A stretch of DNA of 64,000 nt from Rebecca billardiae RCC1528 (lineage: Eukaryota; Protista; Haptophyta), in contig OZ251222.1 of assembly GCA_965240325.2 (NCBI GenBank), positions 2,914,001 through 2,978,000 of the forward strand. Reading direction: 5' to 3'. Each line of letters begins with the position of its first letter. The first letter of the stretch is position 1. Under the pieces are notes generated by a model, which worked only from the letters and a program-made list of their open reading frames with translations, ran no database searches and was not told where the DNA came from. A program made the position numbers and the translations under genes. Below, in pieces: positions 34,963 to 58,619 of this stretch.

Positions 34963-35541
34963 CCATCACGCGCGCCGCACAGGCATGGGGCGCCGATGGT
35001 GACCGTGACTGGTCCCCGCGCGCTCGTTTGCAAGCTGGGTGCACCCGTCGGCGGGCGCGGGGAGGATAGATCGGACGCGAAGGTCCACAGCACCTGCGGC
35101 CAAGCTCGTCCCGTCGTTCTCGTCCCGCGATCATTCACGATGCGCTCAGCCAATGCCACCACCCTATCGGGGACGGCCGACGGCGCGGCCGCAGGCGTGT
35201 CGCGCCGAGAAGCCGAGAGAGGGCCGAATATGCGTTGTTGGACAATGTCGCCGAAGCGGTCCCAACCGGCGGCGTCCGTCGAGGGTTGCCCGGGCCCTGT
35301 GGCGCCCCGTTTCATGGACATCCAGGCACGGCGTCTGTAGCCTGCCCGCCGGCAGCGGCGAGGGCGGTCGTGCGTGCGGCTGTCGGGTGAACCAAGGGTG
35401 GTCGGTGAACAATACGGTAGGGCGCCGGACGCAATACTGCATGGGTTCAAACCCCCAGTTTCCAGGTCTCTCTTCGGAGAGCGTGCGATGAAGGATGGCG
35501 CGGCAACCTGCCACCGTGAGCCTTACGCACGTTAAAACAAA

Positions 35542-36030
35542 GGGAAAACCCCGGAAGTCCGACGAGGACCGACCGAGCAACCAGAACTCCGACAAACCTC
35601 CGCATCTCAGCACGGCGATTTCCGGACTGGCACCCCCGCCAGTTTTCCGACGGCCAGAAGCTTCGGGAGCGAGCAAATGGCGCCGCTCGCCCGCAACGCG
35701 GAAGATACCGCTCGCGGCGAACCGGCGCGAACGCCCGCCTTGTATTCGGGCGGAGTACCCTAATGAGCGGGGGTGGGTACTTTCGTATTGCGCGCAGCCT
35801 GACGCCCACCCGCGACGAAACGACGCCGTCGACTCCTCCCGCCCGGACCGCCGCCGGAACGTTGCTCGTCAATTAGTTAGAGAAATGCGACGCCGGGGGG
35901 CGCGCCGCAAAACTTGCTCCCGAGCTCGCCACGAGGGACGATCGATGCCTCGCACGACGTTAAGGGGGTACGCCTGCCACGCGCGCGGGCGTCGTGCGCG
36001 CGCCGCGTGGTCGCGCGCGGCGCATCGCGC
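35542..36030 (+). repeat. MULE left TIR
   Basis: Reverse complement of 52841-53329 except 3 mismatches in the first 9 bp, a 13-nt divergent patch (35939-35951) and a few single differences seen by eye. Confidence 0.95.
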
Positions 36031-39000
36031 GCGCGTGTGTCTTCGTTCGCGCGCGCGGCGTGCGCTCGCGCATGTCGTCACGCCGTGCGTTCTGCGTCGT
36101 TGCGCGGCGTCGTGCCCGTGTGCCGCGCGCAGGCCGCCGCCGCCTGCGGGGACGACTCCGACTGCGACGAGCTTCGCGAACGGGGCTGCTGTGGACGTGG
36201 TGTACGAGCAGGGTGCACCGGCAGTCCGTGCTGTGGTCGCGGCGCTTGGGGTCGGCGCACACGGGCGAGTGCAGACGTACGTCCTCCGGGCTGCCGAGGG
36301 AGTGTCTGCTCATGCGTGGGCTGCGGTCCCTGGCGACACCGTCGGTGCGTCCGCGGATGGAACAGTCGAGGGCGCAGGCTCGTTGAAGAGGGTGCCAGCG
36401 GCGCACGTGCGTGCGCCGCCCGCCGGCGAGCAGTGCGCCGAGCAGGGGCAGGGCGCCGAGCAGGGCGCCGAGCAGGGCGCCCTGCTCGGCGCCCTGCTCG
36501 GCGCCGAGCCGGGCGCCGAGCAGGGCAAGCAGGCCGCCGAGCAGGGCGCCGAGCCGGGCGCCGAGCCGGGCGCCGAGCAGGGCGCCGAGCAGGGCGCCCA
36601 GCCGGGCGCCGGGCAGGGCGCCGGGCAGGGCAAGCAGGCCGCCGAGCAGGGCGCCGAGCCGGGCGCCGAGCAGGGCGCCGAGCAGGGCAAGCAGGGCGCC
36701 CAGCCGGGCGCCGGGCCGGGCGCCGAGCCGGGCGCCGAGCAGGGCAAGCAGGCCGCCGAGCAGGGCGCCGAGCCGGGCGCCGAGCAGGGCGCCGAGCAGG
36801 GCGCCCAGCCGGGCGCCGGGCAGGGCGCCGGGCCGGGCGCCGGGCCGGGCGCCGAGCAGGGCAAGCAGGGCGCCGAGCAGGGCGCCGAGCAGGGCGCCGA
36901 GCAGGGCGCCGAGCAGGGCGCCCAGCCGGGCGCCGGGCATGGCAAGCAGGCCGCCGAGCAGGGCACCGAGCCGGGCGCCGAGCAGGGCGCCGAGCAGGGC
37001 GCCCAGCCGGGCGCCGAGCAGGGCGCCGAGCAGGGCGCCGACGGCCGGCCGGCCCGCCACGGCAGCACGCGCGTGGGCGGCGGCAGCTACGCCGCCCAGG
37101 GCATCCAGCAGGAGGCTGCGGGGCAGCGCGGCGCGCAGGGGGCGGCTCACCACAACGGGCGCGGCGGCGTGCGGACGCGGGCCATGCGCCGCCAGCCGCC
37201 ACGTGCGCCACCCGCCGAAGCGCTGCCCGGCGTCACCTCGGCGCCGACGGCGCCGCCGTCGGCGCCGACGGCGGTCGCAGGCGTCACGGCGGCGCCGGCG
37301 GCGCCGCCTGCGGCCGCCGGCGGCCCCGCGACAAGCGACGAACGCGCCGAGCCGCCACGCGCACCCGTCGCAACGCTGGCGCCGGCGCCGGCGCCGCCGC
37401 CGGCGCCGACGGCGGTCGCCGGCGTCACGGCGGCGCCGGCGGCGCCGCCTTCGGCCGCCGGCGGCCCCGCGACAAGCGACGAACGCGCCGAGCCGCCACG
37501 CGCACCCGTCGAAACGCTGGCGGGTGCCACCGGCGTCACCGCGGCGGCGCCGGCGCCGCCGCCTGCGGCCGCCGGCGGCCCCGCGACGCGCGCCGAACGC
37601 GCCGAGCCGCCACGCGCACCCGCCGAGGCGCCGGCGGCTGCCACCGGCGTCACCGCGGCGGCGCCGGCGCCGCCGGCGCCGGCTGCGGCCGCCGACGGCC
37701 CCGCGGGCGTCAACTCAGATGACTCCGGTGGTGCTGCCTCGGGCGAGGTGGCACGGGCGGCGACGGCGTCGACCGCGACGCGCGCCGAACGCGCCGAGCC
37801 GCCACGCGCACCCGCCGAGGCGCCGGCGGCTGCCACCGGCGTCACCGCGGCGGCGCCGGCGCCGCCGGCGCCGGCTGCGGCCGCCGACGGCCCCGCGGGC
37901 GTCAACTCAGATGACTCCGGTGGTGCTGCCTCGGGCGAGGTGGCACGGGCGGCGACGGCGTCGATGGGTGGAGCGGCGGCTGGCGCAGCGGGGTCGCACT
38001 CCCATGCACCACAGCAGGCGCCCGCCGCCGCGCAACCCGGCGGTGGCGGCCACGCGGACGACGGCGGCGGCGTCTACGGCAGCGGCGACGGCGGCTCACG
38101 CGAGCTGTTCGCGATGAGCGATGTCTTGCAGCACGTGGATCATTTCTTCAGCGGCATCTTCGGGAAACGCCGGAGGTTCGGCGGAGACACGCCCGCCGCG
38201 CCGGCGCAGGCGCACGCGCACGTGCTGGTGCGCCCCAGCGCGGTGGCGGATGCGGACGCGCGGACGACGAAGCACGGGCCGCAACCGAACAACGGCCGAT
38301 TGGTGCCGGCCATCCTCAGGTTCAACCGCGCGTTCGCGTCACGGCATCTCGGCGGCGGCGGCGGCACGGTCCGCGTGGTGAACGTGGTGTGCGATGCCAC
38401 GAACAACAAGCACTTCGGCGTGCTCACGGATGCCGACGCTGTGCGCGAGCTGTGCGCCTCGGGCGCCTTGCACACGCGCAGCGAGGTGGACGATGCGGTG
38501 CGCGAGTTCTACGCCGGCGCCGCCGCGAGCGTCGGCGGCGGCTCTGTCTCTGAGCTCGCCCTGCGCGCAGCAGGCGAGCACTTCGGTGTGCACGGCCCGT
38601 TGCCCTACGTCCTCGACGCGGACGTGCGAGTCGCCTTAGCGGACGCTGAGGCCGACGACGATGGCGTCGCAGGCGGCGACGCGCCCTGGGTTCACCGGGC
38701 GCTTGCGTTGCCCTCGATGCGGCGCTCGGGACAGGCGGTGTTCGGCCTCCCCGCCGTGGTTGCACAGGCGCCCTCCTGGTGCGCGCTTGTGCCCACGCCG
38801 CTGCGGGCGCCCGCTGAGCAGGGGACGTCGCCTTTGCTGCACGCCGCCGTGGCCGTGGTGGACTACCGGTCCGTGGACACCGACGACACCGACGAGTCGG
38901 AGCCCGTCGTCGGCGCGCACGCGTACGCCATCCGCTTCGAGGAGGGCTGGCGCCTCCTCACCTTCGCCACGCGGCCGCCCAGTGGTGCGGCGGGCGCGAT

Positions 39001-41665
39001 GACGGCTGCGACGTGCACGGACCTCACGGTCGGAGCCTTCGCCGCCGCCGTCAGCCGGCGTGAGGTTGCTGCGTGCGAGCTGCAGTCAGCGCCGCGGGCC
39101 ATGGCGCCCCCCGTCCAGCACGCCGCCCCCGCGCTCCACGACCCGCCGCCCAGCCCGGACGAGACGGACGCGTTGCCGCCCCGCCCGCGCCGGGACGTGG
39201 TCCCGACGTCCACGGACGTGCTCATGGGCGCCTCCGCGGTGTGCAGCGCGCTCGGCATCGGGCCATGCCATTGGGCGCCCGATGGCGACCCGCCCGGGCT
39301 CATGACGAACGCCGCGGCCATCGCGGAGGCGGCGCTCACGTACGTGCAGTCGAACTACGACGTGATTGGGGGCACGGCGGCGTCGGCGGACCTGCTGCAC
39401 ACGCTCCACCAGATCATGGTCGCCGGCCGCCCGCAGCGCTCGTTTGACAGGCCTCTCCCCCGGCCGGGCGGTGGGACGCGCGTGCGCGTCGCAGGCGTCG
39501 TCGGCGAGCTGCCCGTCCATGAACAAGAGCTGATGCTCGCCTCGAAGCACACGTGCGTCGCGGCGGCCATCGCGTGCGCCTCGGCGCTCGTGCTGCGCGT
39601 CAAGGCGGCACACCTGCGATACGACGCCCTCGCCGACGTCAGCGTGGGCGATGGTGCGTCCTTCGAGGCGGCGGACTACCTCACCAAGGTGCGCATCGTC
39701 AGCGCACGGCTCGTCGCGCCCGAGCGGAAGAAGCGGCTCACCTTCGAGCTCCTCGCCGTCTCCGAGGATAACGCCGGTGCTTACGACCGCGTGCTCAACG
39801 CCGACACGAGCTCGCGGGCACTCCACCGGGACGAGGTGCTCGAGTTCACCTACGTGCCTTCGAAGACGCGCTCGTGGAAGTCGACGGAGGCGCTGTCAAC
39901 GCACAGCCGCGCGGCGGCCGGCGACGACGCCGACGCCGGCAACTTCGGCACGCTGTTCTTCGTCCCGCACATGCGCGACCCCGTGAAGGCAGCCGCCCTG
40001 GCGCGCCCGCCGCCTGCCGGGACGCCACCTGCCGCGCCGCCCGTGGGTGCGATTGTGGACTTTCGCCCCTTGTGCATCAGCGTGTGGGCTGACATCGTCC
40101 CGTTCTGCCAGGATCGGCTCTGGACGCACCCGGCGGACCCAGTCACCGGCAAAAGCAGCGGCGTGGACGCGCCGAAGATGTACGCCGCCGCGCTCCACAG
40201 GCGCGCGCCCTCGCTGGCGCGGCACGTACAGGCGGCGCCAGCGCGCAAGCGTCGCCTGAACGAACGCGGCGCCGACGCGGGCGGCGCGGGCGGCGCCGCC
40301 GGTGGGCGTGTGGTGGCGCGCCGGCCGGCCGGCGACCCGGGCCGCGTCGCCGTCACACGGCCATCCGCCGTCGCGCGCGCACCCGGGCCACCCGAACAGG
40401 CGACGCGCATGTGCACCGAGCTCGCTGCGGCCCACGCGGCCCACGCCCAGCTCGCTGAGATGGTGCACGGCATCCCCAACGCAATGGCACAAGCGATCGG
40501 ACAACTCGCTGCGAACGACGCCAAGCGCCAGAAGGAGTACGAGGCCTGGCGCGCGGCGGACGACGAGCGGCGCCGGCTGGAGCGCGCGGCGGACGAGGCC
40601 TGGCGCCAGCAGGAGCGCGCGGAGGCGGCGCGCCGACGCGACGAGGATCGCGCGGCCGCAATGAAACGTGACGAGATCGCGAGCGCGATGGTGGCGTCTA
40701 TGCAGGCGTTGACGCAGTTCATGATGGACCGCAGCGCAGGTGGCGCACAGCCCGGCCCGCACGCGTCGGCGCACGCGGCGTGCGTCCAGCTGCCAACAGG
40801 CGAAGCACCGCACGGCGCGCACGCCCCGGCTGCGGGCCCGTCGGTGAGCGCTGCGTCCGCTGCGCCCACGTCGCGCGCACCCACGGCACGGCGTGGCGCG
40901 CCGCCGCCGGTCGCATTCGGCCAGCGCGCGCGGCGCCGAGTGCCGCCCCCTGACTCGCGTGTGCCCGCCAGGCCGCTGCACTGTCGCTCCGTGCGCCGGC
41001 CGCGCAGGCCGACGAAGCCCCCGCGGGCCAGCCCCCGCCGGCCGCGCAGTAGACGCCGACCCACAAGGGCGCGTCCTGACGTGCCCACGCGCCGCCCACA
41101 GGTGCGCGCACACACCACATCGGGCGGCGCCAGCCGTGCGCACGCCGAGCGGCGTGTACGCGCAGCCCTGGCTCAGTCGCGCCCGACCGCCCCCGTGCGC
41201 GCGCGCGCGTCGCGGTGGCGTGCACAGGCTGCGCGCCACCCGGGGCGGCCACGCGGGTGGCCGCCACCGCTGGCAGCATCTGGCCACGAGCTCGGCACCC
41301 GGGGTGCCGGCGGAGTGGCTCGTCGGGATCGCCGTGGCCTGAGCCCGATTCTCCGAGCACACGGCCACAGGCACCCCCCCGGCCAGCGCCTCTGCGCCAC
41401 TCGCAGTGACGGCGCCACAAGGGCCTACGGCGGGGCCCGCCGAGAAGGTCTTAGCGCAGGTCTTAGCGGGATGCAAGCAGCGCCACGCGCGACAACACTG
41501 ATACACGCCGCCGGGGGCCCACACTGTGCCGGCCCGTGCTATGTCGTCGTCAGCTCGGACGCAGGCCGGCCGGCCGGTGCCGAGTCGGCGCCTGTCGTTC
41601 TGTTAGCTGGCACCTGGCGTGCTCAGGCGGCGTGGTGCGCACTCAACGTACTCCTGCAAGGGTGA
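35945..41665 (+). CDS. MULE second gene (mudrB-position), large orphan protein
   Basis: Uninterrupted ORF. Candidate ATG at 35945 with an in-frame intron 35968-36132. Possible Tudor/SH3-like N-terminus, [QP]GAE repeats, A/P-rich repeats, a ~700-aa globular-looking middle and a coiled coil. The 3' part after about 40850 probably needs further splicing. Confidence 0.7.
36436..37040 (+). repeat. 12-bp coding minisatellite (GCCGAGCAGGGC; [11 protein letters not shown])
   Basis: Direct observation. Confidence 0.95.
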
Positions 41666-44600
41666 TGTAGCTCGCATGAAGTGCGCCAGACGCCCCTCGT
41701 TGTTGTCGCGCGCCGAACGCGCCTCCAGGGGCGCCGTCGCCGACACCACCGCGCCGAAGTGGCAACGGCCGTCGTACACCACGGCCATCCACGTCGTGCC
41801 CAACTGCGTGACGTCCAGACGCTGCAAGGCGCGCCGCGTGCGCTCGTCACGCAGGCGCAGGTGCGCATGCGTGCTCACTGCGACGCTGCCCTTGCGCCCG
41901 CCGTCGTCAGTCCGCCGCCAGCGAAGGCCCGGCCGCGTCTGCACGGGGTAGAACCAGACGTTGTCGGTGAACGCGCGCCACGCCGCCTCCTCCGGCGTAG
42001 CCCCGCCGCGCAGCTCAAGGACCACCAGCGGCAGGCCCGTGGCGCGCGCCGTCGCGACGTGCGAGCCCCACGCCGACCACGCACCAGCGCGCGCCGCATG
42101 CGCGCCAGCGCCGTCGCCCGTGTACCGGGCGCCGCGCGCGTACGCGCGCGCCGCTGCTCCCAGCGTCCGCACGCCTCCAGTATGTCGCAGTGGCAGTGGC
42201 AGCACCTCCTGCCAGTCCTCGTCCTGCACTTCGAGTCCTTGGCCGGTGCGGGCCCGGGGGATGGATGCTGGCTTGACGCCAAGCATGCCGAGCGCGCTTG
42301 CCGCCGACGCCGTGGCCGACGCCGTGCCGAGCGTCTCGCCCGGTCCGTGCTCGTCCTCCCACGACGCGATGTACGAGCACACGCCGTCGCGCAGCGTCTG
42401 CGCGCGCGCGTTGGCGGCGGGCAGGTCGGCCCGCACGCCACGCGTGTCGTGCGCGAGCCACGCGTGAAAGTAGCAGTCGCCATCGCCGGGAACGTCCTGC
42501 ACGCTCGTGCCGCCGCCGAAGAGCTCGCGGATGGCCGCGGCGACGTTGCCGTCGCCATCCACGCCGCCGGGTGCTCCGGTCTGTGCACCAGCCCGCGCCT
42601 CGGGCGGCAACGCCGGCGGCAGGGGCAGCACGGGGAAGCCCAGGCGCTCGAGCAGGACCGCGGCGTCGTCCACCGGCGCGTGCACGTGTGCGGCGGCCGC
42701 CGGAGCCACCGCAGCCGGCGCAGCCCCGTGCCCGGCGGGCGCCGGCGCCGCCGCACCCGCGTCCACGGTGGCGTCCGTCGCCGCCGCGGCGCGCGGCGCG
42801 GCTGCGCCGCGTGGCGCGGCATCACCCGCCGTCACGTCAGCGCGGCATCGCTCCGCCGTCACGTCAGCGGCGGTCTCGCCCAAGGCCAGGCGCAGCCCCA
42901 AGCCCACGTCGCACCGCCATGCCCCGTCGGAGCCGTCGAGAGGGACCACCTCGGTGCCGAACGCGCTCGGGTCCAGCGCATCCACCTCGCACCCGCGCCG
43001 CCTGGACGCCAGCCTCACGTGCGCGTCCGCAGCCGGCTGGAACGCACTCCAGCGCGACGCCGGCAACACCCCGTGCGCGCGCGGGGTGGCCTGCGGCGCA
43101 ACCACTGCGTAGAACTGCCGGCGAGGACACACGTTGCGCACGATGGCCACCCAGCCGGTGCCCATCGCCCCGACGTCGAGCGTGCGCAGGACGCGTGCGT
43201 GCGTCTCGCGTCCCAGGCTCAGGCGCGCTTCGCACAGCGGACGTGCGTCCGCGTGCGCGGCGCCTGCGTCGGGCGTGTCGGCGCGCCGGCGCTTCGCGCC
43301 GGCGCCCCCGCGAGCGCGTGGCGCCGCCGGCGCCGGCGGCACGCGCACTGCCGTCGGAGGATACCACCGCACGTGCTCACGCATGGCGACGCCGTGCACG
43401 TCGCGAGCTCGGCGTGCGTAGGCCATGTCGAAGACGAGGAGGTGCACGCCGGCGGCGCGAGCGACTGCCGCGTACCACTCAGGGCCATCGCACGTGTTGC
43501 CCGGGCTGCTGACGTACCCGTCGCACGTGTACTCCGCCGCTCGCACTGCCAGCGTCACTGCGTCGTCCAGATCGCGCACGCCCTGGCCGGGGGTGTGCCA
43601 CGACGACGAGTCGTCGGGGGCCACCATGCGCAGAGCCCGCAAACGCGCCTGCCCAGCTTCGTCGCCACCTGCGCTCTCCGGGGGAAGTGCGCGCACGTCA
43701 GCGCCGCACAAGCCGATGAAGCGCGCCTGCGCTCGCAGGTCCTCTGCCGACTCGGCCGGGCCCAGCGCGCCACCCCAGCCGACGGAGTGCTCGGTGGGCG
43801 TGGCATGCGCGTGCGCGGCCAGCCACGACGCGGCCGCCGCGCGCAGGCGCCGCGCGCAGCACGCCCACCACAGGGCCTCAAGCGTGCTGGGCGGACGCGC
43901 CCGCGCGTGCGCGTGCGCGAGCACCGCGTGCAGCACGTCGTCACCGTCGGCTGGCACGGGCAACGGCTGTGCGGCGCCCGCGCCCCAGAGGTCGTCGAGC
44001 ACTGCCTGGGCGCAGCAGAGCCGTAATCGGGCGAATTCGGCGTCGTGGTCGTCTGCGCCGGCGGCGGCGTCGGCGGCGTGGAACAGGCGCACCGGCGCGT
44101 GGCGGTCATCGCCCGCGGCGCGCGCTCCAGCGTCGCGCACCGGCAGACCAGTGCGCGCCAAGTGGGCGACCGCGTCGTCCGCGGTGGCGACGGCTGTGTC
44201 GTCCGCGGCACCAGACGTGCCACGCGCCGTCCCCAGCAGGTCGGCGCCTGCGCGCGTTGGGCCCGGCGTCGGCACCGACCGCGCCGCCGACGATGGCCCC
44301 GCCGTGGACGCGCGGGCGCCCGCCGCCTGGCGCGAAGCCGGCGGCAGGCGCCCATCCGCGGCCGCACCGCCCGCGTCGTCGGCGGCGGCCGCAGTCCGAG
44401 GGCGCTTGGGCGCGCACGGCGCAGACGCGGCCCCCGCGCCCGCGCGGGAGGTGCCAGCCGCGGCGCCCGCCTGGCCTGCGGCGCCTGCGCCCGCGCCGCC
44501 GCCGCCAGCCAGGACGTCCGCCAGGCCCGCCGCCGCCGCCGCGACGTCGTGTGCGCCTGCGTGCGCCCACACGTGGGAGGCCGCGTTCGGAGCGGCGCCG

Positions 44601-47600
44601 CCCGAGCCCCTCGCGCCGCCACTGCCCTCGGCGGGCACGGCGGGCGACGCGTGCGCGCGCGCCAGCTCGGCGGGGGCGGCGGCGGCGCGCGCAAACTGTG
44701 CCAGCACCTTGCCCGTCGTCGCGCTGGACGCGCCGAATGCGTCACCGGCCGTCTCGCTGAGCGTGGGCCACGGTGCTGACAGGCCGCGACTGCACATGAA
44801 CATGGCTGCCCTGCCCCGACCGATGCCAGGTATGCGCTGCAACGCCGCGAGCACTGCGGCGCTGTCGTCAGCGAGGCGCGCGTACGCCGACTCGGACTCC
44901 GCCGCCTCCGCCGGTGGCTCTGCCGCGCCCGCGCGCGCCCGAGGGACTCGCGCACCCGGTGGCGGTGGCGCGTGGGCGCCGGGCCACGGGGGGCGGAAGG
45001 GATGCTCAGTCGCCGCCAGCGGTACTGTGTCGCCCGTGGCCGGCAGCGGCTCCGCGGCGTGCGCGCGCGCGCGCGCGGCGGGCGTCGTGCCGGCGTCCGC
45101 GCCACTGCGCGGGCCCGTCGTGCCCTCAGGCGGTGCGGCCGGCCGCTGCGTGGCGGCGTTTGGCATCGGTGCCGTCGCGAAGCCCATGCGTACGCCGGTG
45201 CCGCCAAGTGCCTGCGAGGCGATCGCGCGCGCGCAGTGCCGGCGCGGGCCGCCGCGCGCGCCCGCGCCCGCCGCGGCGGCGCCGTCGCGCGTCTGGGCGG
45301 CCGCCGGCTGCGCGCGCCCGGGCGCGGGCGCCGCCGCGCCGCGGCCCCCGCGGCCGCCTGCGCGGCCCCCGCGCGCGCCTGCGGTGCGCGCGGGGTCGCC
45401 GCGCGCGGCCCCACCGCCGTGCTGTCCGCGCATACGGTGGTATGGCACGTCCTCCGGCCTCGCGCCGCGCGGCCCGTCGGGCGCCGCCGCCTCGCCCGCC
45501 GCGGCTGCGCGCGCTTCGCGCAGGCGCTTCCACGCCCCCGCGACGAGCAGGAAGTAGCAGCACGTGCACATGTACAGCCCGCTGTCCAGCGCGCCGAGGT
45601 GCCACACATACTTGCACTGCGCGGGCGAGTGGATGAAGCAGGCGCAGCCCTGGCACGCCAGTCGGGGGTCGATCGGCGGCGAGTCCGCCGGCCACGCCGC
45701 GCTGAGGTCCGCGGCCTCGGGGTCGAAACACGCGCAGCAGCGCAGTTGCGCGGCGGCGGTCGTGCCGGCCGTGTACGTGGCAAAGTGGCGACGTCGCTGG
45801 TTCGCAACCACACCCTCGCGGAGCGGGCCGGCCACGCGCACGAGCACGTTAGTGTCGTCGAGCACGTGCGTGTGCGCGATGCCGTACAGGTGCTCCGGCA
45901 GCCCCTCGAGCACACGCGCGAGCTCGTCGCGGTGCGCTTCGCGCACGCGCCGGGCGAAGTCGCCGTCCGGGGCTTGCTCCCTCAAGGGGCGCACGTACGA
46001 CGCCGCGGATTTGCCCAACTGCACGCGCGGCGCGCGCGCGCGCGGTGCGCGCGGGTGGCGCGCCCCGGCGCGGCCCTCCCAGAACGCCAGCCGTCGCGCC
46101 GAGGACGCGGGCCTGCCCACGCGCGCGGGCACCGCTGGCATGGCCACGTACTTTTCGAGCAGGGCGCGCTTGGCGAGAGCGGGCAGCAGCAGAGCCGCAA
46201 TGGCGTCCTCCAGGCGCTGGGGCGGTGTGATGACGTCGAGCTTGGTGATGGCCACGACGCGCCCGAGCGTGTCCACCCGGGTGTCGTTGGCGTCGCGCTC
46301 GACCCGAAGGCCCACCTGCGCGAACCACGTCTCGCAGCGCAGGTCCTGGGGCAAGCACGTGCCCATGGCACGGCCGACGGAGGTCGCCACGCGGCAGAAG
46401 TGCATGCACGGCAGGCGCTTGCGGCGCAGCAACGCGCAGCACCGGAACTCGTCGAGGTACACGTGGCGCGGCGCCGAGCCGTCCGTGGTGTTGAGCATGC
46501 GCAGGGCACCTGCGTGCGGCCCGTCGAGGACACGGTGCACTTCCACCTGAGAGAGCGTGCGCGCCGTGCTCACCTGCTGGCGCACGTATTCCAGGTGCCG
46601 TGGCGGCAACCCGTGCACCTCATCATCGGCGTCGGGCTTCAGGGCGTGGCGCACGGCGACGCTGCGGTGCGTCGCGTAGAGGCGAAAGAGGTTGTCGTGC
46701 AGGTCGAGCAGCATCCACACCGGGCCCTGCGCCTTGCGCACCGGCAGCAGCCAGTGCATGAAGGACTCCGCCGGCGCGGACGTCACGTAGCCGCGCAGGG
46801 ACACCGGCGCGAAGCACGGGAAGAGCTCCTCGCGGGGGATGACGTCGAGGATGCGCTTGGCCGACTCTGGCATCTCCACCCAGGCGGCCTCCCACACCTC
46901 CTCGGTCAACGCGTCCACGCACGCGTCGAACACGCGCAGGATGGTGGGCACCTCGTTCGCCGAGTGTGCGTAGCCCGTGATGAAGGTCTGGCGCTTGTGG
47001 AACGTGCACAGGAAGAGGTGCCTGCGCGGGCACAGCAGCTTCCACGCGCCGCGCAGGCCCTTCTGGCCGTCCGAGATGGTGACGCCGTTGGGGTCGTCCC
47101 ACACAGCCGCCCCGCCGAGGTGCTGCATGAGGTATCCGACGTGCGCGCACCACGAGTCCAGGCACTCCACGTCGACGATGTACGACACGCACAAGACGAA
47201 CAGCTGCCGGTTGGCGTTCACGGCCAGCGTGACGAAGAGCATGCCTGCGTCGCGCGCGTGCGTGCGCGCGGGCAGGTCAGACGGGCGGGCGCTGAGGCGG
47301 CACGGACGCACGCGGCGTCGCGAGGGCGTGCCCGGGTGCGGCGGGCGCGCGCACCCGCGCGCTTCGCGCCACCGCTGGCGGGGCGGTGCAGGAAGCACGC
47401 GTCGCTGAACGCGGCCGTGTTGCCCTTCGCGTGAAAGTGCTCGCGGTAAAGCGCCTTGGCCTGCTTGGGCACGTAGTGGAAGCCACCCACTGCCTTCTTG
47501 CCGCGCACGTCAGCCAGCGCCTTCTGCACCTCCGCCGCGTCGGGGTTGAAGGCCGCGCGCTGCGCGCCCGCCGGCAGCCCCTGCTGCACCTCGTCGTGCA

Positions 47601-50600
47601 CGCGGCCGAACATGGCCAGCAGCGCGTCCTCGACCGAGTTCTCGTGGAAGATGATGGGCGCGACCTCGTTGCCCTCCTGCGACAGCGACGCGCACACGGC
47701 CACGAGGTCGCGCGACATGGCCGTGTCGTCCCCGTAGATCTCGGCGCGCGCTTCTTTGTGCGCTCGCGCGATGAGCGATTCACCCATGGGGAGCTCTGCG
47801 TCCAGCTGGCGCGCGACCTCTCGTGCTTGCTGCGGGCCGTAGCACAGCTGCGCGTGCGTGGTCCCGCGCCGGGCCAAGCGCGCCTTCCAGTCCTCGACGA
47901 TCGCCCGCCCGAGCTCGTGTTGGGAGTACGGCGTCGTGCGCACGCCCGGCTGGTTGGTCGGGCGCGGCAGCGAGCCGATGGGGTGTTCCTCGGACCCCTT
48001 GCCCATGCGCAGGTTGCGGCACATGGAGCCGTGCGCGACCGAGCGTTGCACGGCCCACGGCGGCGCGCCAAACGTGTCCACGTACTTCGACGGGCCCACC
48101 ACCACCACGGACGGGCACCCGGGCGTGGGGCATCCGATCGTCAGCTTGGCGCGGTCGACGCGCCGCGTCGGCGGCATGGCCCCCCGGTGCAGCGCGCACT
48201 CCGAGGCGTGCGTGAGCGCGTCGGCGAGGCGCGGGTACACCTGGCGCACCATCGGGGGCTCGAGCAGGGTGGCGTCCGCCTTCACCTGGGAGTACGGGCG
48301 CGGCGCCCGCAAGCCCATTTTCCTCCACAGTGCCAGGGGCCGGAGCTCGAGGCGGTGCGCTGCCGCCGACGTGCTCGCCGAGGTGCTCGACGGCGCGGAG
48401 TAGCGGAAGTACCCGGCGTCACCGCCGTGGTGCAGCGACTCCGGCGCAACAAGCCGGGCGCCGGCCTGGCCGGCGCGGGGCTCGGCGGGACCGGTGGAGG
48501 GCGGCTGCGCGCGAGCGACGATGGGTGGACACGGCATGAGGGCAGCCAGCGGGTCGCGCGCGCGAGCGGCGTCGCTGTCGGCGGACTCGTCCGCCTGCAG
48601 TGCCGCCTGCGCCGCGCGCGCGCGGGCGTCCGCGCAGTCGTCGTCCGCGATGCCCTCCTCCCAGTCGCGCACGTCGATGGCGGCACTGGCGGGATCGGCG
48701 TCCGTGACGAGCGGCTCGCCGCGGGCGTCGGACTCGCCGACGCGCATCGTCGGCCAGTCCGCGCTCAGGGCGAACAGCGGCGCGTTGCCGCGGGCGGCCG
48801 CCGTCGTGTGCGTCCTATGGCCCACGGACGCGTCGACGAGGGGCACTCCACCGCGCGCCCATGCGGGCGCCGACTTCTCCGTCGCCAACGCGTCGGCAAG
48901 GTGGCCACCGAGGTGGGCACGCTGGCCGGCGTGCAGGGCCAGGGCGAGGTCCCCGCCGGACAAGAGGCCACCTGCGTGCGGCAGCGCAGGGAGGGCCCTC
49001 AGCCGCGCGTCGTCGTCGTCATTGCCGCCGTCGCCACCGGAGGCGCCGCGCGGCTGCGGCGGCGCGCGCGAGGCGCAGCCGGGCGGCTGCGCGATCACCG
49101 CGCGCGCGCTGCTGCTGTCGAGGGGCGGCCCCGCCGGGTGGAGTGGCGGGCGCGCCGTCGCGGCGCACACAGCAGCGCCGGGCACCGTCACCGCGACGCA
49201 GGGCACGGCGTCGCCCGCAGCGCAGGGTGCGCCCGGCGCTGGCGTTGCCACGCGAGCGGGCGAAGAGTGCCCATCGCCAGGCCGCGGCGACGCGGGCTCG
49301 TGCGCGCCCGGCGCGTCCGAGCTCGAGCTTTGGCGGGCGCCGGTGTGCCGCAGCGGGGCGGACGCTGCGTCGGGGCGACGCACGGCCGTGGGCGCGCGCG
49401 GCCCGACAGCCGGGTCGTCAACGCCATCGGCGCGTGGGGGCCGCGCGCCCTCGTCAAAGGGGGCGCCCACGTGCGCGCCCGTGCCGTGCGCGGCCGCGGC
49501 GGTGGGCGCGCGCCCACCGCCGTCGGCGTGAGGCGCGGGGTGGCCGCCCGCAAGCCCCACGACGTGGGGCACGGCAGGCGCCGCTGCGCGCTCATGTGCG
49601 AGCTGCGCGCCGTCGGCAGCGCACACGGGCAGCGCCAGCTGCAGCGCCGACTGCGCCCAGGCCCGCTGCTCGTGGTCCGACGGCGCCTGCTGGCCGTGCG
49701 CCGCGGTCGGCAGGTCGACCACCAGGCGGGAGACGTACTCGTGGTGCGCAGGCGAGCCGAGCCGGAAGCGGGCGTCAGCGCCAGCGCGCGTGGGCTCAGC
49801 CCCCCAGCGCAGCCTGGTCTCAAACGAGTGCTGGAGCCCGCGCTCGAGGGCGGGCACGAGCCGATACGGCGTGGGAGGCGGGTCGGAGCGCGCCGCGCAC
49901 GGCGTGGCGGCGGGGCGAGGCGCGCTCGGCGGCGGCGTGAACGAAGCGCGGAATGTGTCCGCGAGGCCCCGCCCCCCGAATGAGAACACAGCCTTCAGGA
50001 CGAGCGCGTCCGCCGCACCCTGACGCGTAGGCCTCTTGCGCGAGGACGACGGCACGGACCCCGAGGACGCGGCGCGCGCACTGGGGGCCGAGCGGTGATG
50101 CCACATGGCGGGGAAGATGTGCACTGCACCTGCGCTTTCCTGCAGGGCAACGTCGCCGTGCAGCGGCACGGCGTCGGCGCGCGCACCGGGGGGGCGCGCG
50201 CCGACCGTCTGCAGCGGGAAGGGATTGGTGGGCACACTTTGCGGCAAGTGCAAGAGGACCACTGCCGTCCACAGATGGTCCTCGTCGGTCGTGCCGTCGA
50301 CGTGCCACCCGTACGTCGTGACGTCGCCGTCGTCGCACGTGCCGCGGCCCCCGTCGGGCGGACGCATCGGCCGCCCGAAGACATGCCAGGCCGTGAGGTC
50401 GAGCGCGTCGAGGCCGCGGACACCGTCAGAGGCGTCGCCGCGGAACAACGAGCTCACGACGCCCTTCAGCGCCGCCACCACGCGCTCAAAGGCGCGGCAC
50501 CCCAGCACCGAGCGCGCAGAGGAGCCGTGGTCGCCCACCCCCCAGCGCCGCTGCGCGGCCGCCTCGCCGCCCGCGTCCGCGGACTGGTACGCGTGCACCG

Positions 50601-52509
50601 TGCGCAGGAGGCCGCCACCCTCATCCAGCAAGGGCATGGACGCATCGCCGTCCCCGCCGAGGCCTGCGTGCTGCAGCACGTACTCGCGCAACGGGCCAAC
50701 CAGCACGCCCATGTCCATGTCCAAACGCTGCGGTGCCGCAGCGGCGGCACCAAACGCGGCCTGCAGCGCGCGCCCAACCGCGGCGTTATGCGCGAGCATG
50801 TCGTCGAGGCTGGGCGCGGGCGCCGCCGCAGGCGTCGGCGCCAGCGCGTCGCCCAGCGGCGGCTCGCCTGCAGGCGGCAGCGCGCGCGGCACCACCACGG
50901 CGGAGGCAGGGCGCATCGCGCCCGACGCCGCGCTCGTCACCTCGTCGCGCCACGGCGCAGCGGCGCCCACGACAGCGTGCGCACCGCACAGCGTCAGCAC
51001 CAGCGTCACTGGCGGCTGCGAGACGGCCGCGCCGGCCACGAGGGCCTGCGCGAAGGTGGCGTCGAGCAAGGGGTGCAGACGCGCGCCCTCGCCGACGTGC
51101 ACCAGCGCGGGCGCGAGCGGGATGACCACTGCCCACACGGTGCGCTCGGCGATGGTGGAGGCGGCCCGCAGCAACGGCCGCGCCAGCCACCCTTCGCGCA
51201 GCGAGCCGTCCTCGCACGCGGCCACAAAGGCCGCAAGACCGGCGTGGCCGTCGGCGACCACGGCAGCACGCAGCCTGACGGCGGCTGCGCGCACGGCGGC
51301 GTCACGTCCAGCGGCGGCGCCGGACGTGGCAGCGCGCGGCGCTCCATCTGCCGCCACCCCTTCGCCGGCCCCCACGACGGCCTGCGAGACGGCGCCGAGC
51401 CACGCCAAGCGGGCGCTCTCGAGTTCCGCACGCAGCTGCTGGTCGCGCCAGCGTGCCTGCTCAGCCGACGCGGGAACGAACGCGCGCGGCTGCGCCGGCA
51501 CGGGCGCGCAGAGCGCGCGTACGGCAGCGTACGCCTGCGTGCGCAGCTCCGCCGCTCGCGCACGCAGCGCGTCCGCGCAGAGGCTGCTGCGGCCTGCTGG
51601 CCACGACGCCACGCGCTCGAAGGCGACGAACAGAGGCTCGGACTGGCCAGCGTCCGCGCCGAAGACGGCGCGCGCGTAGTACATCACCGCCTCGGACGGG
51701 CATGACAGCGGCGGGCACGGGGGGGGCGCGCCCGTCCAAGCGCCCGACGGCGCCGCCGCCGCCGCCGTCGTCGCCGGGAGCACGTCGTCGACGCCTCCGC
51801 CAGTCCCAGCACCTGGGCGGGCATCCGGACGGGGGGCGCACAACGCCGCCAGAGCCAGCTTCGTCCGGAACGGAGCGGCGGCCCAGGCCGCACGCACTGC
51901 CCACGCGCATGCGCCCTGCGCGTGCTCAGCGGCGCGTGCGTGCTGCCCTGGGGTCGGCGCCGAGGACGACGGCGACAGCGACTCCGCGCCACCCGAGCGG
52001 CGCGCGTGGGACGTGCCTGCGGGCGGCGGCGCCGGTTTCCCTCCGAGCGCCGCTGCGGACGCCGTCAGTCGCGCCGTCTCCGCGAAACTGCCCTCCTCCG
52101 CCAGAGCCCCGTCGGCGGAAGCACCACAGGCAGCGCGCACGGCGATCTGCGCGACGGCCCTGAACCAAAGGGCCGCCGCGCACACGCGCGCCACCGAGTC
52201 CGCGCGCTCACGCAGCGCGTCCGGGTGCGAAGCCAACAACTCCGCACACTCCACCACAGTGAGCAGCGCGTCGGCGCCGCTGCCACCCCATACGCGCGGC
52301 ACTGTGACCTGCGCGGCGGCGGCGCCAAGGCCCACGTCGGTGCTGTGGACCACGCCGAGGGTGCACAGCACCAGACCAAAGGTGAACGTCCACGGGGCTG
52401 CTGCCGAGGAGAACTGCAGCGTGCACAACGCGTCGTCAGCCGCTGCGATCACCGCGTCCACGAGCAGCAGGTCGTCCTGACTGCTGGGGCCGGCGGACAC
52501 ATGCCGCAT
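41603..52509 (-). CDS. ~3,600-aa MULE transposase polyprotein (2OG-Fe(II) oxygenase-like, MuDR/FAR1-type DBD, DDE, SWIM, PHD-like, HhH, pseudo-OTU, OTU)
   Basis: ORFs 47218-52575 and 41603-47398 are joined by a phase-1 intron 47354-47245 (GTGCGC...GCAG), giving FSDACFL...G|MLFVTLAVNANRQLF...TISDGQKGLRGAWKLLCP..HLFLCTFH...TSAPAESF. DBD GCPTPGCP..WAV..HGSMC; SWIM RCC..LPCMH; other motifs are detailed under findings. Start codon uncertain. Confidence 0.88.
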
Positions 52510-52840
52510 GCCCGCCTGCGCGGTACGTGCCAGCACGTGCGGCGGAGAGGCAAACGCAGGCGCGCGCGAGCACACACACGGGGCACATCGTCAGACAGGG
52601 GACGGGGGCGCATGGGAGTGGTGCGGTGTGCGCGCGCGCGGCGGCGCACGCCACCAACATCGCTGCCGACCACACACACCCGCCCCGGCCCACCGCGACC
52701 TCGCACCATTCACGAATCACGAGTGCGACTTGCCTGCTCGTCGCGGCCGGCGACCGTCGACGCCTCAGACCGACTCGGATGCGAGAAGGGGGAACTCCTG
52801 CGAGGGGAGGCCGCAGGGAACAAGAACGGTCGGTGCGTGT

Positions 52841-53329
52841 GCGCGATGCGCCGCGCGCGACCGCGCGGCGCGCGCACGACGCCCGCGCGCGTGGAAGGCG
52901 TACCCCCTTAACGTCGTGCTCACGCCCAGCCCTCCCTCGTGGCGAGCTCGGGAGCAAGTTTTGCGGCGCGCCCCCCGGCGTCGCATTTCTCTAACTAATT
53001 GACGAGCAACGTTCCGGCGGCGGTCCGGGCGGGAGGAGTCGACGGCGTCGTTTCGTCGCGGGTGGGCGTCAGGCTGCGCGCAATACGAAAGTACCCACCC
53101 CCGCTCATTAGGGTACTCCGCCCGAATACAAGGCGGGCGTTCGCGCCGGTTCGCCGCGAGCGGTATCTTCCGCGTTGCGGGCGAGCGGCGCCATTTGCTC
53201 GCTCCCGAAGCTTCTGGCCGTCGGAAAACTGGCGGGGGTGCCAGTCCGGAAATCGCCGTGCTGAGATGCGGAGGTTTGTCGGAGTTCTGGTTGCTCGGTC
53301 GGTCCTCGTCGGACTTCCGGAGGATTCCC
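52841..53329 (-). repeat. MULE right TIR
   Basis: Inverted copy of 35542-36030. Confidence 0.95.
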
Positions 53330-53347
53330 TAAAACAAATAAACTGTA

Positions 53348-54904: not shown

Positions 54905-55735
54905 CGACGCGCCCATCGCGCTGGAGCCGCTGTCATCCGACGCTGCTGTGCCCGCGCCCAGCAGCGCTCGACTCCGCGCCCAGTGCGGCGGCAGCAGCAG
55001 GGATGGTGCCACGGCGGGCGGCGGGCGCTGATGCAGCTGACGGCTCGGCTGTGCGCGCCCGAGGGGCCTGGGCGACGGGCGCGCCGAGCGCGGTGACGCC
55101 TCTCGCCTCGCCCGTCGCGCTGGAGCCGCTGCCATCCGACGCTGCTGCGCCCGCGCCCAGCTTGGGCAGCAGCGACTGCGCTCGACTCCGCGCCGCGCGC
55201 GGCGGCAGCAGCAGGGATGGTGCCACGGCGGGCGGCGGCGGTCGACGGAGCTGCCAGCTCGGCGGTGCGCGCCCGAGGGGCCTGGGCGCTGGACGCACCG
55301 AGCGCGGTGCCGCCTCTCGCCTCGCCCATCGCGCTGGAGCCGCTGCCATTCGACGCTGCTGCGCCCGCGCCCAGCTTGGGCAGCAGCGGCTGCGCTCGAC
55401 TCCGCGCCGCGTGCGGCGGCAGCAGCAGGGATGGTGCCACGGCGGGCGACGGGCGCTGATGCAGCTGGCGGCTCGGCGGTGCGCGCCCGAGGGGCCTGGG
55501 CGACGGGCGCGCCGAGCGCGGTGACGCCTCTCGCCTCGCCCATCGCGCTGGAGCCGCTGTCATCCGACGCTGCTGTGCCCGCGCCCAGCTTGGGCAGCAG
55601 CAGCAGCGCTCGACTCCGCGCCGCGTGCGGCGGCAGCAGCAGGGATGGTGCCACGGCGGGCGACGGGCGCTGATGCAGCTGGCGGCTCGGCGGTGCGCGC
55701 CCGAGGGGCCTGGGCGACGGACGCGCCGAGGGCGA
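54905..55735. repeat. ~214-bp GC-rich tandem repeat, about 4 copies
   Basis: GGATGGTGCCACGGCGGGCG recurs with ATG at 55003, 55217, 55431 and about 55644. A more degenerate ~225-bp duplication precedes it (54460-54870). Confidence 0.85.
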
Positions 55736-55846
55736 TGACGCCGCCTGCTTCGCCCAGCGCGCCGAGGAGCAGCTGCTGCCGTTACTCTGACTGACGTCTA
55801 CGTCTACTGAGATGATGCCGATGGCGTCTTGCAGTACGACAGCATC

Positions 55847-55864
55847 ATATATATACATACATAC

Positions 55865-55926
<62 letters not shown>

Positions 55927-55932
55927 ATACAC

Positions 55933-55991
<59 letters not shown>
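55847..55991. repeat. (TA)n/(CATA)n microsatellite
   Basis: Direct observation. Confidence 0.95.
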
Positions 55992-55994
<3 letters not shown>

Positions 55995-58619
55995 TGCAGG
56001 ATTGGAATTTTCCGTGACGCTTCGGACGGTCCGCAGCTCGAGTCAGCGAATCCGGTCTCGGCCGGACAGTGGAACTCGGGTGGAAGCCGCGACTTCGCGG
56101 CGGACGGAGCCTCAAACGAGCGGTGCCTCGGCTCGCGGCGCGATCTACTCGGCGAAGACCGACGAGGCTGCTCGCGGGCCCGACTATGCGTCGACGCGGG
56201 CTGGGGTCGTCTTCCGCGTGGCGCTGGGCAAGTTCCTCGCCGCCCTGACGGGTGCTCTCCTTTCGCCCTCACGGCGCGCGCGGTGCGTTTCGCGAGCTTC
56301 TTGCATGCGCCGCCCGCGGTTGCGCCCGAGCCTGATGCTTCAGTCGACACGGCAGGTGGCTCGCGCAGGGTGGGATTGTGTGCGGGTGCCGCTGGCGGTG
56401 CGTCTCACCCTCCTGAAATTGTGTGGGAGGCTGTGACATTGCACGCGTACACCCCGCCACGCCCGCGGCCCGCCCGCGCAAACGCCGCGCCGCGCAGTTG
56501 TCTTTGACCTCGAGCGAGCCTGAGGCGTGGAGGCGACCGACGGCGGGGTGCGACTTGCCCACCGACCCGAGCCGCATCACCCAGCGCAGCCTCGCCCGCG
56601 ACGACGCTTCGCCTGGCTGCCACTGCTCAGCCGCGTGCAAGGCGGGCTGGGCGACGTCTTTGCGAGCGCGGCTGCAGCGCAGCACGCGAGAGGCTGGAGC
56701 GCCATGACGCGGATGGCGGAGCGGGCTTTGGGCTGGCTGGCATGAGCCGCCAGGCTGTACCGTCCGCGCAGATCGCGCTCGGCCCGGCCGCAGCCCTCCT
56801 GAGCGCGCGCCTCAGAGCTGAGACTGATCACGTGCACGCGCACAAGCCACACTGCCGTGGCTGTGTCGAGCAGCTGCGTGTGCTCGAGGCGCGGCGCTCG
56901 CACGGGCCACGCGGGCGCAGCGGGTGCGCGCAGCTGGCGCACGCAGTGCCACGTCCTGCCGCGCCAGTTTGGCGGCCGTCCGCCCCCCCGAGCTCGAGTT
57001 CTGCGCGCTTTGCGACGGCGCGGCCGGCCGCGCCCATCTTCATGCTTGGGCACGCCAGCATGGCCGCCGCCGGGCCTGCTGCGCGCGCCGAAGCTGGAGG
57101 GCGGAGGAGGGCGCTGGGCTGCTCCTACGGCGTGCTGCAGCCCGGGCAGGCTTTTCCGCGGCGCGGCGAGGCCGTCGCGCCTGCTCGCCGCCGTCGAGTC
57201 GCCCGTGCTGAGTGACCGTCGGCCGCATGTGCTCGGCGGCACCGCAGGCAGGCGTCCCATACCAGTGTGCTCGAGCCGCTGCGCGCACCCAAGGCGAGCT
57301 GCTCGAGCGGGCTAGGTGGGCCCACGGAGTGCGCGCAGCTGGCGCACGCAGCCCCGCGTCATGGGGTGTCGGTTTGACGGTCGCCAGCCCCCGTGGGCTC
57401 GAGCTCTGTGCGCTTCACCACGGAGGTGCCGACGGCGCCCCGCGGCGCGCAACGGCGTGGCAGCATGGCCGCCGCCGGCGCCGCCGCACATGCCGCCGCT
57501 TACGGGCAGTCGAGAGCTTGGGGCAGCACCTACGGCATGCTGCAGCTCGGGCGGGCTCTGCCAGCCTGCTGTGGCGTGATCGCGCATTTTCCAGACCGTC
57601 GACTCGCCCGCGCTGCATATTTGTTTGCCGCGCGTGCTCGACGGCGCTGCTGCCGCCGCTACGGCCGCGCGTTGCTGCGTCGCGAGCGAGCCCGATTCGA
57701 GCTGAACGGCGGCGTGCTCATCGCTGCTGGCGCAGATGGGCGCGTCATGGTGGCCACGCACGGTGCTGAGTGCTCGCGCGTGCCAGACGAGGCGCGTGCT
57801 CGCGCTGTGGCTCAATGTCCGGCAGTGCGCGTGGCAGGCCGCAGCTGCTCGACAACAGAACCAGCGGGCAGTGATCGGGCTGCGCGCGCGCAGCTGATGG
57901 CGGCGAACGAGCGAGCCCGCACCGCCGCGCAAGGGCTGGGCGACTGGCGCCGAGGTGGCGCGCACGTCGTCCGCTGCCGTTGGCATCGCGGCGGACGCTT
58001 CAAGCTCGTTCGGCCGGCGTGTTTTCTCCGACGCCCACCTGCGAGCGCTGCCGGCACCGTGCTCGGGCGTCAGTATCGGTGGGCTCGAGCACGCGTGGTG
58101 AGGCGCTCGGAGCGGTCGACGGCCATGATGGGGCAGCGCACGGTGGGCGCAGGCCACGCGCACGCCAGCGCCCCGCGTGGCGTGGCTTCACGGGGCGCAG
58201 CCACCAGGAGACTGTGCTGCGACGAGCTCGGGCGCGCTCGGGCGCCGCTGCTCTGCATTTTCCCGAAAAATCGGTTTTCGTGCCCTCGACCGGCGGCATG
58301 CCGCCGGGGTGGCCGCAGCTGCGCTCGGAGCAGCGCGCACGGGCACCGCCGTGTGCGCCCGCCCGCTTTCGCCGCCGCCGAGCTCGAGCACAGCGCTGCG
58401 CGGGGCTGCGTAATGCCAACGGCGCATGATTTTTTGCCCGCGCCGAGCGCGCGTCGGCGCGCGCAGCGCGCTCAGGTGTGGCCTGCTACCAAGGTCTGTG
58501 CCACGATTCGACGCGCCTATGGTGCGCCGAATTTAGGCGCACCGCTTCAGAATTGTCCGATGATTCGACTAGTGGTGCGGACAACTTAAAACGTCACCCT
58601 GAGCAGTTTTCCGGCACTG
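55992..58619. mobile_element. Non-autonomous TIR element (2,628 bp) with CAGTG ends in TA tracts
   Basis: Gapless imperfect 53-bp inverted repeat with conserved blocks CAGTGC.GGA / GTGACG.TT / GTCCGCA.C.C.AGTC. Internal degenerate ~405-bp duplication (about 56920 vs 57325). No recognisable protein. Confidence 0.65.

Follow-up and report, generated by a model that had tools for sequence, protein, structure and literature searches.

We analysed a window of 64,000 nt from the haptophyte Rebecca billardiae RCC1528 (GCA_965240325.2, contig OZ251222.1, positions 2,914,001 to 2,978,000; coordinates below are those of the window unless a contig is named), which carries a complete Mutator-like element (MULE) with a giant transposase gene. 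A sister family about 50% identical to this element is present in the same genome in three copies, two of them intact (C13 and C27) and one frameshifted (C24). Within the first exon of the transposase gene lies a 280-aa segment (49951..50790, minus strand; amino acids 596-875 of its open reading frame, ORF). Comparison of the two families shows that it is a conserved domain under purifying selection, and that it belongs to one gene with the transposase by way of a predicted, conserved intron. The segment is best read as a highly diverged prolyl 4-hydroxylase (P4H)-type Fe(II)/2-oxoglutarate (2OG) oxygenase domain with a putative double-stranded beta-helix (DSBH), a reading of the fold that is unproven and to which we assign a probability of roughly 0.6 to 0.65. 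The whole explanation, in which this P4H-type domain sits in the transposase and would act as a protein hydroxylase, is given about 0.62.

A conserved oxygenase-like segment in the transposase gene

A preliminary description of this DNA had proposed that a 2OG-Fe(II) dioxygenase-like domain is fused in frame with the transposase. Minus-strand translation of 49900-50700 gave ...TTYGWHVDGTTDEDHLWTAVVLLHLP...AGAVHIFPAMWHHRSAP...LVLKAVFSFGG, with the WTAVVLL strand region reading HLWTAVVLLHLP. The motifs named in that description (YGWHVD, WTAVVLL, VHIFPAMWHHRS and LKAVFSF) were present as described, in the same uninterrupted ORF of 1785 aa (52575..47218; the gene and all its parts are on the minus strand) as the first transposase Asp. 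YGWHVD (50296..50313) holds the proposed Fe(II) ligands H758 (50302-50304) and D760 (50296-50298), with a Tyr (Y755) at position -3, and is invariant in both families; the equivalent in one host P4H domain (L044) is FGWHFD. T770 in HLWTAVVLL (50266..50268) was aligned to the Thr of the RxxT motif of 30 PF13640 domains cut from the R. billardiae genome (the host domains below). This column is Thr in 24/30 host domains and invariant in both transposon families. The proposed distal Fe(II) ligand, H827 in WHHRS (50095..50097), is also invariant, lies 67 residues after D760, and was paired by hhalign with the invariant His of the host domains. The invariant K861 in LVLKAVFSF (49993..49995) is the candidate ligand of the 2OG C5-carboxylate, placed on the last strand in the alignment-guided model alone. 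It follows H827 by 34 residues, versus about 10 expected for a basic residue on the last core strand, and the gap is filled by a low-complexity Ser/Arg-rich stretch of about 24 residues with conserved length and the core K-[KR]-P-x-R. In the proposed fold, this loop between the distal His and the Lys strand is the unusual feature.

The GC content is 76-78%, and long ORFs are present in several frames. We put the weight on conservation rather than on ORF length or motif, because long ORFs are common in such GC-rich DNA and an HxD...H pattern arises easily by chance. In the segment, GC at codon positions 1/2/3 was 0.76/0.56/0.87 (GC3 > GC1 > GC2), and identity to the sister family at the same positions was 0.65/0.68/0.49. 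The ratio of nonsynonymous to synonymous substitution rates (dN/dS) against the sister family was about 0.46, similar to that of the DNA-binding/MULE part. As to the proposed ligands, H758, D760 and H827 of the putative triad, for which conservation among copies had been suggested as a check, are invariant between the two families, as are K861 and the blocks TTYGWHVD, VHIFP, HRSA and KAVF.

Conservation along exon 1, which is 42% identical to the sister family over 1798 columns, peaked at aa 441-560 (62-82%), 641-680, 721-760 and 801-840, the last two of which contain the proposed ligands. The most conserved block of the exon, aa 441-560 (50896..51255; ...EGWLARPLL...TVWAVVIPLAPALVHVGEGARLHPLLDATF...), stands directly upstream of the oxygenase-like domain and may be a separate domain or a part of the oxygenase-like module; Pfam gave no match on this block, the N-terminus or the linker.

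The gene itself was assembled from two overlapping ORFs. Exon 1 (47373..52509) runs from the first Met (ORF aa 23; start codon assumed) to the splice donor, and contains in order the conserved N-terminal blocks, the oxygenase-like domain, a long Pro/Ala-rich linker, a presumed DNA-binding region and the first catalytic Asp. The 1785-aa ORF ends in ...AAFSDACFLHRPASG, which contains the Asp taken as the first catalytic residue of the MULE core (FSDACF, 47401..47403), read directly and assigned by pattern only. Exon 2 (41603..47244; stop TAA at 41603-41605) is drawn from an ORF of 1931 aa (47398..41603) that overlaps the first in a different frame. The remainder of the MULE catalytic core (MLFVTLAVNANRQLFVL...ISDGQKGL) and the C-terminal region lie in this exon, which shares 53% identity with the sister family across 954 columns.

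Removal of a predicted GT..AG intron of 128 nt (47245..47372; donor G/GTGGCG, acceptor GCAG/GC, the slash marking the splice site) fuses the two ORFs in frame as ...HRPAS-G-MLFVTL..., giving a predicted product of 3,592 aa from the first Met. In the sister family an intron of 174 nt (C27) or 182 nt (C13) lies in the same position between the same donor G/GTGGC and acceptor CAG/GC, the difference being an 8-nt indel within a C-tract that is longer in C13. In the C27 copy (C27:994199-1003960) the intron reads through, yielding a single ORF of 3254 aa with a 60-aa Pro-rich insert, and in C13 it breaks the frame. Intron removal restored the frame in all three copies compared (window, C27 and C13), which gives the predicted junction good comparative support. 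Pfam recognised the MULE core below threshold: PF10551 matched 46997..47239 with 17.5 bits (E 0.0056; profile positions 17-95 of 99) and the read-through sister copy with 19.3 bits, both below the cut-off of 27.6. The exons were searched separately, the first positions of the profile lie across the intron, and the two matches covered positions 14-95 of 99.

The linker between the oxygenase-like domain and the DNA-binding region is less well kept (23-47% identity to the sister family), and an open frame at 76% GC is weak evidence of continuous coding. Both points would fit an explanation in which the domain lies outside the mature transposase, through further splicing, translation from an internal start as a product of its own, or decay into an inactive relic. 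We consider this unlikely, since the frame is open over 1785 aa in ten of the ten copies of the element, and the sister family has open frames of 2046 and 3254 aa; the codon-position signature also extends through the linker (identity 0.55/0.55/0.45), and the conservation of the putative ligands speaks against a relic.

Evidence on the fold

The P4H-type reading was suggested by profile and feature comparisons. In a language-model feature search of the ESM-atlas, the nearest clusters to the window domain were prolyl 4-hydroxylases of PF13640 (2OG-FeII_Oxy_3) at 0.94, with 22/30 matches in one set, and those to the sister domain were phage 2OG-Fe(II) oxygenases (PF13759 2OG-FeII_Oxy_5/PF13640) at 0.93-0.94. 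When the two-family alignment was compared by hhalign with the 30 host domains, the score was 22.3 (P 0.008) and was matched by 2/200 column shuffles. The register paired YGWHVD with Y..H.D, WTAV with R..T, AGAVHIFP with G.a.lF, and H827 with the invariant His.

The arrangement also follows that of known enzymes. P4H/PHD-type oxygenases (PF13640; collagen P4H, PBCV-1 vCPH, P. putida P4H, PHD2) share the order Y-x-x-H-x-D...T...G-x-hydrophobic strand...H...K, and collagen-type P4Hs have an Asp-to-His spacing of 69, close to the 67 found here; the Tyr at -3 and the Lys followed by an aromatic residue five positions on are further points of likeness. The preliminary description had taken the Lys, in place of the usual 2OG-binding Arg, as the sign of a distinct subfamily. 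This proved wrong: collagen-type prolyl 4-hydroxylases are known to bind 2OG through a Lys, and the ligand column of the host PF13640 domains holds Lys in 17/30 and Arg in 13/30. As the normal ligand of the collagen type, Lys is no sign of a new subfamily.

Considerable evidence weighs against this reading. The HxD...H pattern on its own is within chance in a 280-aa segment with as many as 12 His and 22 Asp. In the ESM-atlas the shared-feature counts were 160-166, versus 170 typical of same-family matches. With hhalign, P rose to 0.12-0.16 against host subgroup profiles of the K type or R type, and was 0.049 and 0.39 against K-type profiles to which 120 collagen-type P4H homologues had been added; one of these profiles favoured another distal His, H806. 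Pfam searches of whole ORFs, domain and core in both families at E <= 10 found no 2OG family, PHROGs and NCBIfam at E <= 10 gave nothing relevant, and PDB had no match by sequence or by profile. The two-family profile found 0 matches with HMMER among 1.84 billion cluster representatives, a result that does not imply the element's absence from public data. When the genome was scanned with PF13640 (E <= 10), 64 places came up, none in the element, and neither family nor the core alone reached the gathering threshold of this model or gave a match at E <= 10. Several residues nearly invariant in the host family are absent from the domain: Arg of RxxT (now in a His/Trp context), Tyr of YLN (Leu), Gly-Gly (Thr-Asn) and Pro of VxPxxG (Glu), while the Thr and the Gly preceding the strand are kept. 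Moreover, the conservation profiles of the element and the host domains correlated with a rho of 0.12, which was reached by 12/143 shifts and is not significant.

H806 (in PLHGD) was rejected as the distal ligand, as the strand ahead of the distal His would then have no space. A scan of metagenome contigs gave 98 pattern matches, 0 of which were confirmed.

Unguided structure prediction failed. On the natural three-row alignment, AlphaFold gave a mean predicted local distance difference test score (pLDDT) of 36.9 with only the strand order DSBH-like, and Foldseek on this unbiased model returned noise such as MHC class I. A model guided by a multiple sequence alignment reached pLDDT 68.5 and a predicted template modelling score (pTM) of 0.72. 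Its best Foldseek matches were P. putida P4H and PHD2 (E 3e-5), and VIA-align placed residues 14-280 of the model on PHD2, PBCV-1 vCPH and others (Z 11-12, root-mean-square deviation 3.1-3.8, 161-181 residues). This guided model is circular because its alignment contained the 30 P4H domains. The structural check proposed in the preliminary description gave no confident fold in the unbiased run, and a P4H-like one only in the circular run. Within the guided model, pLDDT was about 90 in the N-terminal helices and 84-86 in the K861 strand; only these two features are partly independent, as the host rows have no homologous columns there.

The alignment behind the guided model, made with MAFFT from the transposon rows and the 30 host domains, left H758, D760 and H827 as its only invariant columns. 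In controls, H/D/H fell under the host columns for 1/19 further segments of 280 aa taken from the same gene and for 7/30 shuffles of the domain, which also tells against the reading. Because such controls reproduce the register by chance, it is weak evidence, and its earlier use as good evidence was withdrawn.

The strongest competing explanation is that the segment has another, unrecognised fold, or is a partly disordered beta-rich region, and that HxD...H...K is a coincidence in His/Asp-rich sequence. The failure of every profile and structure library tried to recognise it, the failed unbiased prediction, the chance H/D/H register in 5-23% of control trials, the non-significant hhalign results with several target profiles and the missing family-invariant residues are all what it would lead one to expect. 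Against it, two sequences only 50% identical both fall among 2OG-Fe(II) oxygenase clusters, a family proposed beforehand; the hhalign comparison at P of about 0.01 has the register expected from strand order; the putative ligands lie within the most conserved blocks of the segment; and the spacing of 67 residues from HxD to His fits collagen-type P4H. We regard this explanation as possible, with a minor share of the probability. The DSBH proposal stands in part: a conserved, selected domain in the same gene as the transposase, for which a DSBH oxygenase is the best available reading, with a fold that is not established (no profile library matched, and hhalign P ranged from 0.008 to 0.39).

The host genome has its own P4H-type complement. 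Of the 64 PF13640 places, at least 50 were above the cut-off, and both Lys and Arg types were present; the best named relative of a host P4H was in Pavlovales sp. CCMP2436. No host PF13640 domain is close to the element domain (11-21% identity), and so nothing points to its recent capture from the host's genes.

Possible activity and relation to known systems

If the P4H-type reading is correct, the domain would be a conserved part of the giant, approximately 3,592-aa protein of an autonomous Mutator-like element, in which H758, D760 and H827 would bind iron and K861, together with T770 and Y755, would bind 2-oxoglutarate. Such an oxygenase within the transposase polypeptide would hydroxylate a protein, not demethylate DNA; candidate targets are a host factor and the Pro-rich linkers of the transposase itself. 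A protein hydroxylase is favoured over a demethylase because the named neighbours of the domain are all P4H-type.

The preliminary description had leaned the other way, towards an oxygenase that acts on nucleic acid or methyl marks (TET/JBP, AlkB or JmjC-like) and counters silencing of the element. Precedents for this come from TET/JBP genes on fungal DNA transposons (PMC12730594) and AlkB-like 2OG-FeII_Oxy_2 domains captured by Helitron-like elements (PMC11417382), and a tether to the transposase would bring the oxygenase to DNA. The nearest neighbours, on the other hand, were PF13640 and PF13759, and not PF12851, PF13532 or PF02373, and the candidate Lys ligand resembles that of P4H enzymes, as does the spacing. 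The element was missed by genome scans with three further models, AlkB-like PF13532 (11 places), JmjC PF02373 (14 places) and PhyH PF05721, and hmmscan of the domain with the first two gave nothing. With TET/JBP PF12851 no match was found in the genome, a scan that is uninformative since control genomes also had none; Pfam hmmscan of the domain gave nothing here either. AlkB enzymes are marked by an RxxxxxR motif and TET enzymes by a long insert, and both features are absent from the sequence. Therefore the demethylase proposal found no support, and we consider it very improbable.

The element domain departs from known P4H-type enzymes in several respects. What it shares with them is a candidate Lys ligand, the nearest feature-space clusters and the best matches of the guided model (Z 11-12, circular). 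It differs in having no Pfam match and 11-21% identity to host P4H, in lacking the near-invariant Arg, Tyr, Gly-Gly and Pro, in adding the His-Lys loop of about 24 residues, and in being embedded in a transposase, whereas P4H enzymes are free-standing or of the endoplasmic reticulum type.

In the known examples from fungi, TET/JBP dioxygenases are encoded by separate genes near the transposase gene. TET/JBP genes are carried by KDZ and other DNA transposons, as the preliminary description stated for KDZ, and the text of the report on them has neither the word 'fused' nor 'fusion' (PMC12730594); 2OG oxygenases on DNA transposons are thus already known. The likeness to our element is a 2OG oxygenase that travels with a DNA transposon, presumably with an accessory function that aids it. 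The difference is that the fungal enzymes belong to another family, while here the domain stands in the reading frame of a MULE transposase of a haptophyte. In Helitron-like elements, 2OG-FeII_Oxy_2 (AlkB-like), OTU and Ulp1/C48 have been described as captured accessory domains (PMC11417382), and a passage of PMC12730594 cites SET in Phytophthora MuDR. These captures resemble our case in that a large DNA transposon encodes modifying enzymes beside its transposase, and an OTU-like motif is found here in exon 2; the Helitron-like cases differ in that the reported oxygenase is AlkB-like and the elements are rolling-circle. In the literature searched, no Mutator transposase was reported to contain a P4H-type domain.

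The OTU-like cysteine-protease motif (DGDCYFHA; VQDVPGDGDCYFHAWLAHD) lies in the C-terminal part of exon 2 (41603-44000, minus strand) and has a counterpart in the sister family (VPGDGDCFFHAILAHD); over the whole exon 2 ORF, no match to the OTU family came from Pfam at E <= 1. On the boldest interpretation, an active Mutator transposase would carry both its own protein hydroxylase and, at the C-terminus, a deubiquitinase of the OTU type. The substrate of the hydroxylase would be a chromatin or ubiquitin-pathway protein of the host, or else the Pro-rich linkers of the transposase itself, and, as hydroxylation would depend on oxygen, iron and 2-oxoglutarate, transposition or escape from silencing would be coupled to the metabolic state of the cell. 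We put this forward as speculative and rather unlikely as a whole. To our knowledge, no mechanism that couples transposition or silencing escape to cell metabolism through a hydroxylase has been described for any DNA transposon.

Transposons with chromatin- or protein-modifying enzymes (TET/JBP, SET, Ulp1, OTU, VANC) reveal how mobile DNA manipulates its host, and a P4H-type oxygenase in a Mutator transposase, if true, would be a new enzyme class among these modifiers. Haptophytes are a lineage whose transposons are, as far as we know, almost unstudied, and the substrate of the domain, if it is active, would reveal which host pathway restricts transposition in them. Should the fold assignment fail, what is left is an orphan conserved domain within a giant transposase, which would be of modest interest.

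The element, its copies and neighbouring features

The complete MULE spans 35542..53329 (17,788 bp). Its limits were set at these positions because terminal inverted repeats (TIRs) of 398 nt are flanked by an identical 9-mer. The target site duplication (TSD) TAAAACAAA, read directly, lies at 35533..35541 on the left and 53330..53338 on the right. The left TIR occupies 35542..35938 (plus strand; inverted-repeat search arm 35541-35938) and the right TIR 52933..53329 (minus strand; arm 52933-53330). The arms of 398 nt are complementary at 99%, and the same search gave an additional arm pair of 84 nt with 95% complementarity. MULEs are characterised by a TSD of 9-11 bp and long TIRs; the 9-bp TAAAACAAA and the 398-nt TIRs place the element in this superfamily.

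In the genome examined (72 Mb, 41 contigs), ten copies of the element were found, which differ by 0-2 nt over 3.8 kb and keep the ORF open in 10/10. Ten near-identical copies point to a very recent burst. We read the element as autonomous and very recently active, and from these intact copies it is probably active at present. A profile search of the same genome for more distant copies returned only the same 14 places. Two identical copies, C22:462485-463285 and C22:482244-483044, lie in the same orientation about 19.8 kb apart, and this pair could be the result of local transposition or of segmental duplication.

A second giant ORF of 2056 aa (35495-41665, plus strand) lies within the element, convergent with the transposase gene. 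At about 36450-37040 it contains a GC-rich region of internal repeat and palindrome. Outside the element, a long TA/CA-type microsatellite was observed at 55600-56000, beside palindromic repeats at 55847-55991.

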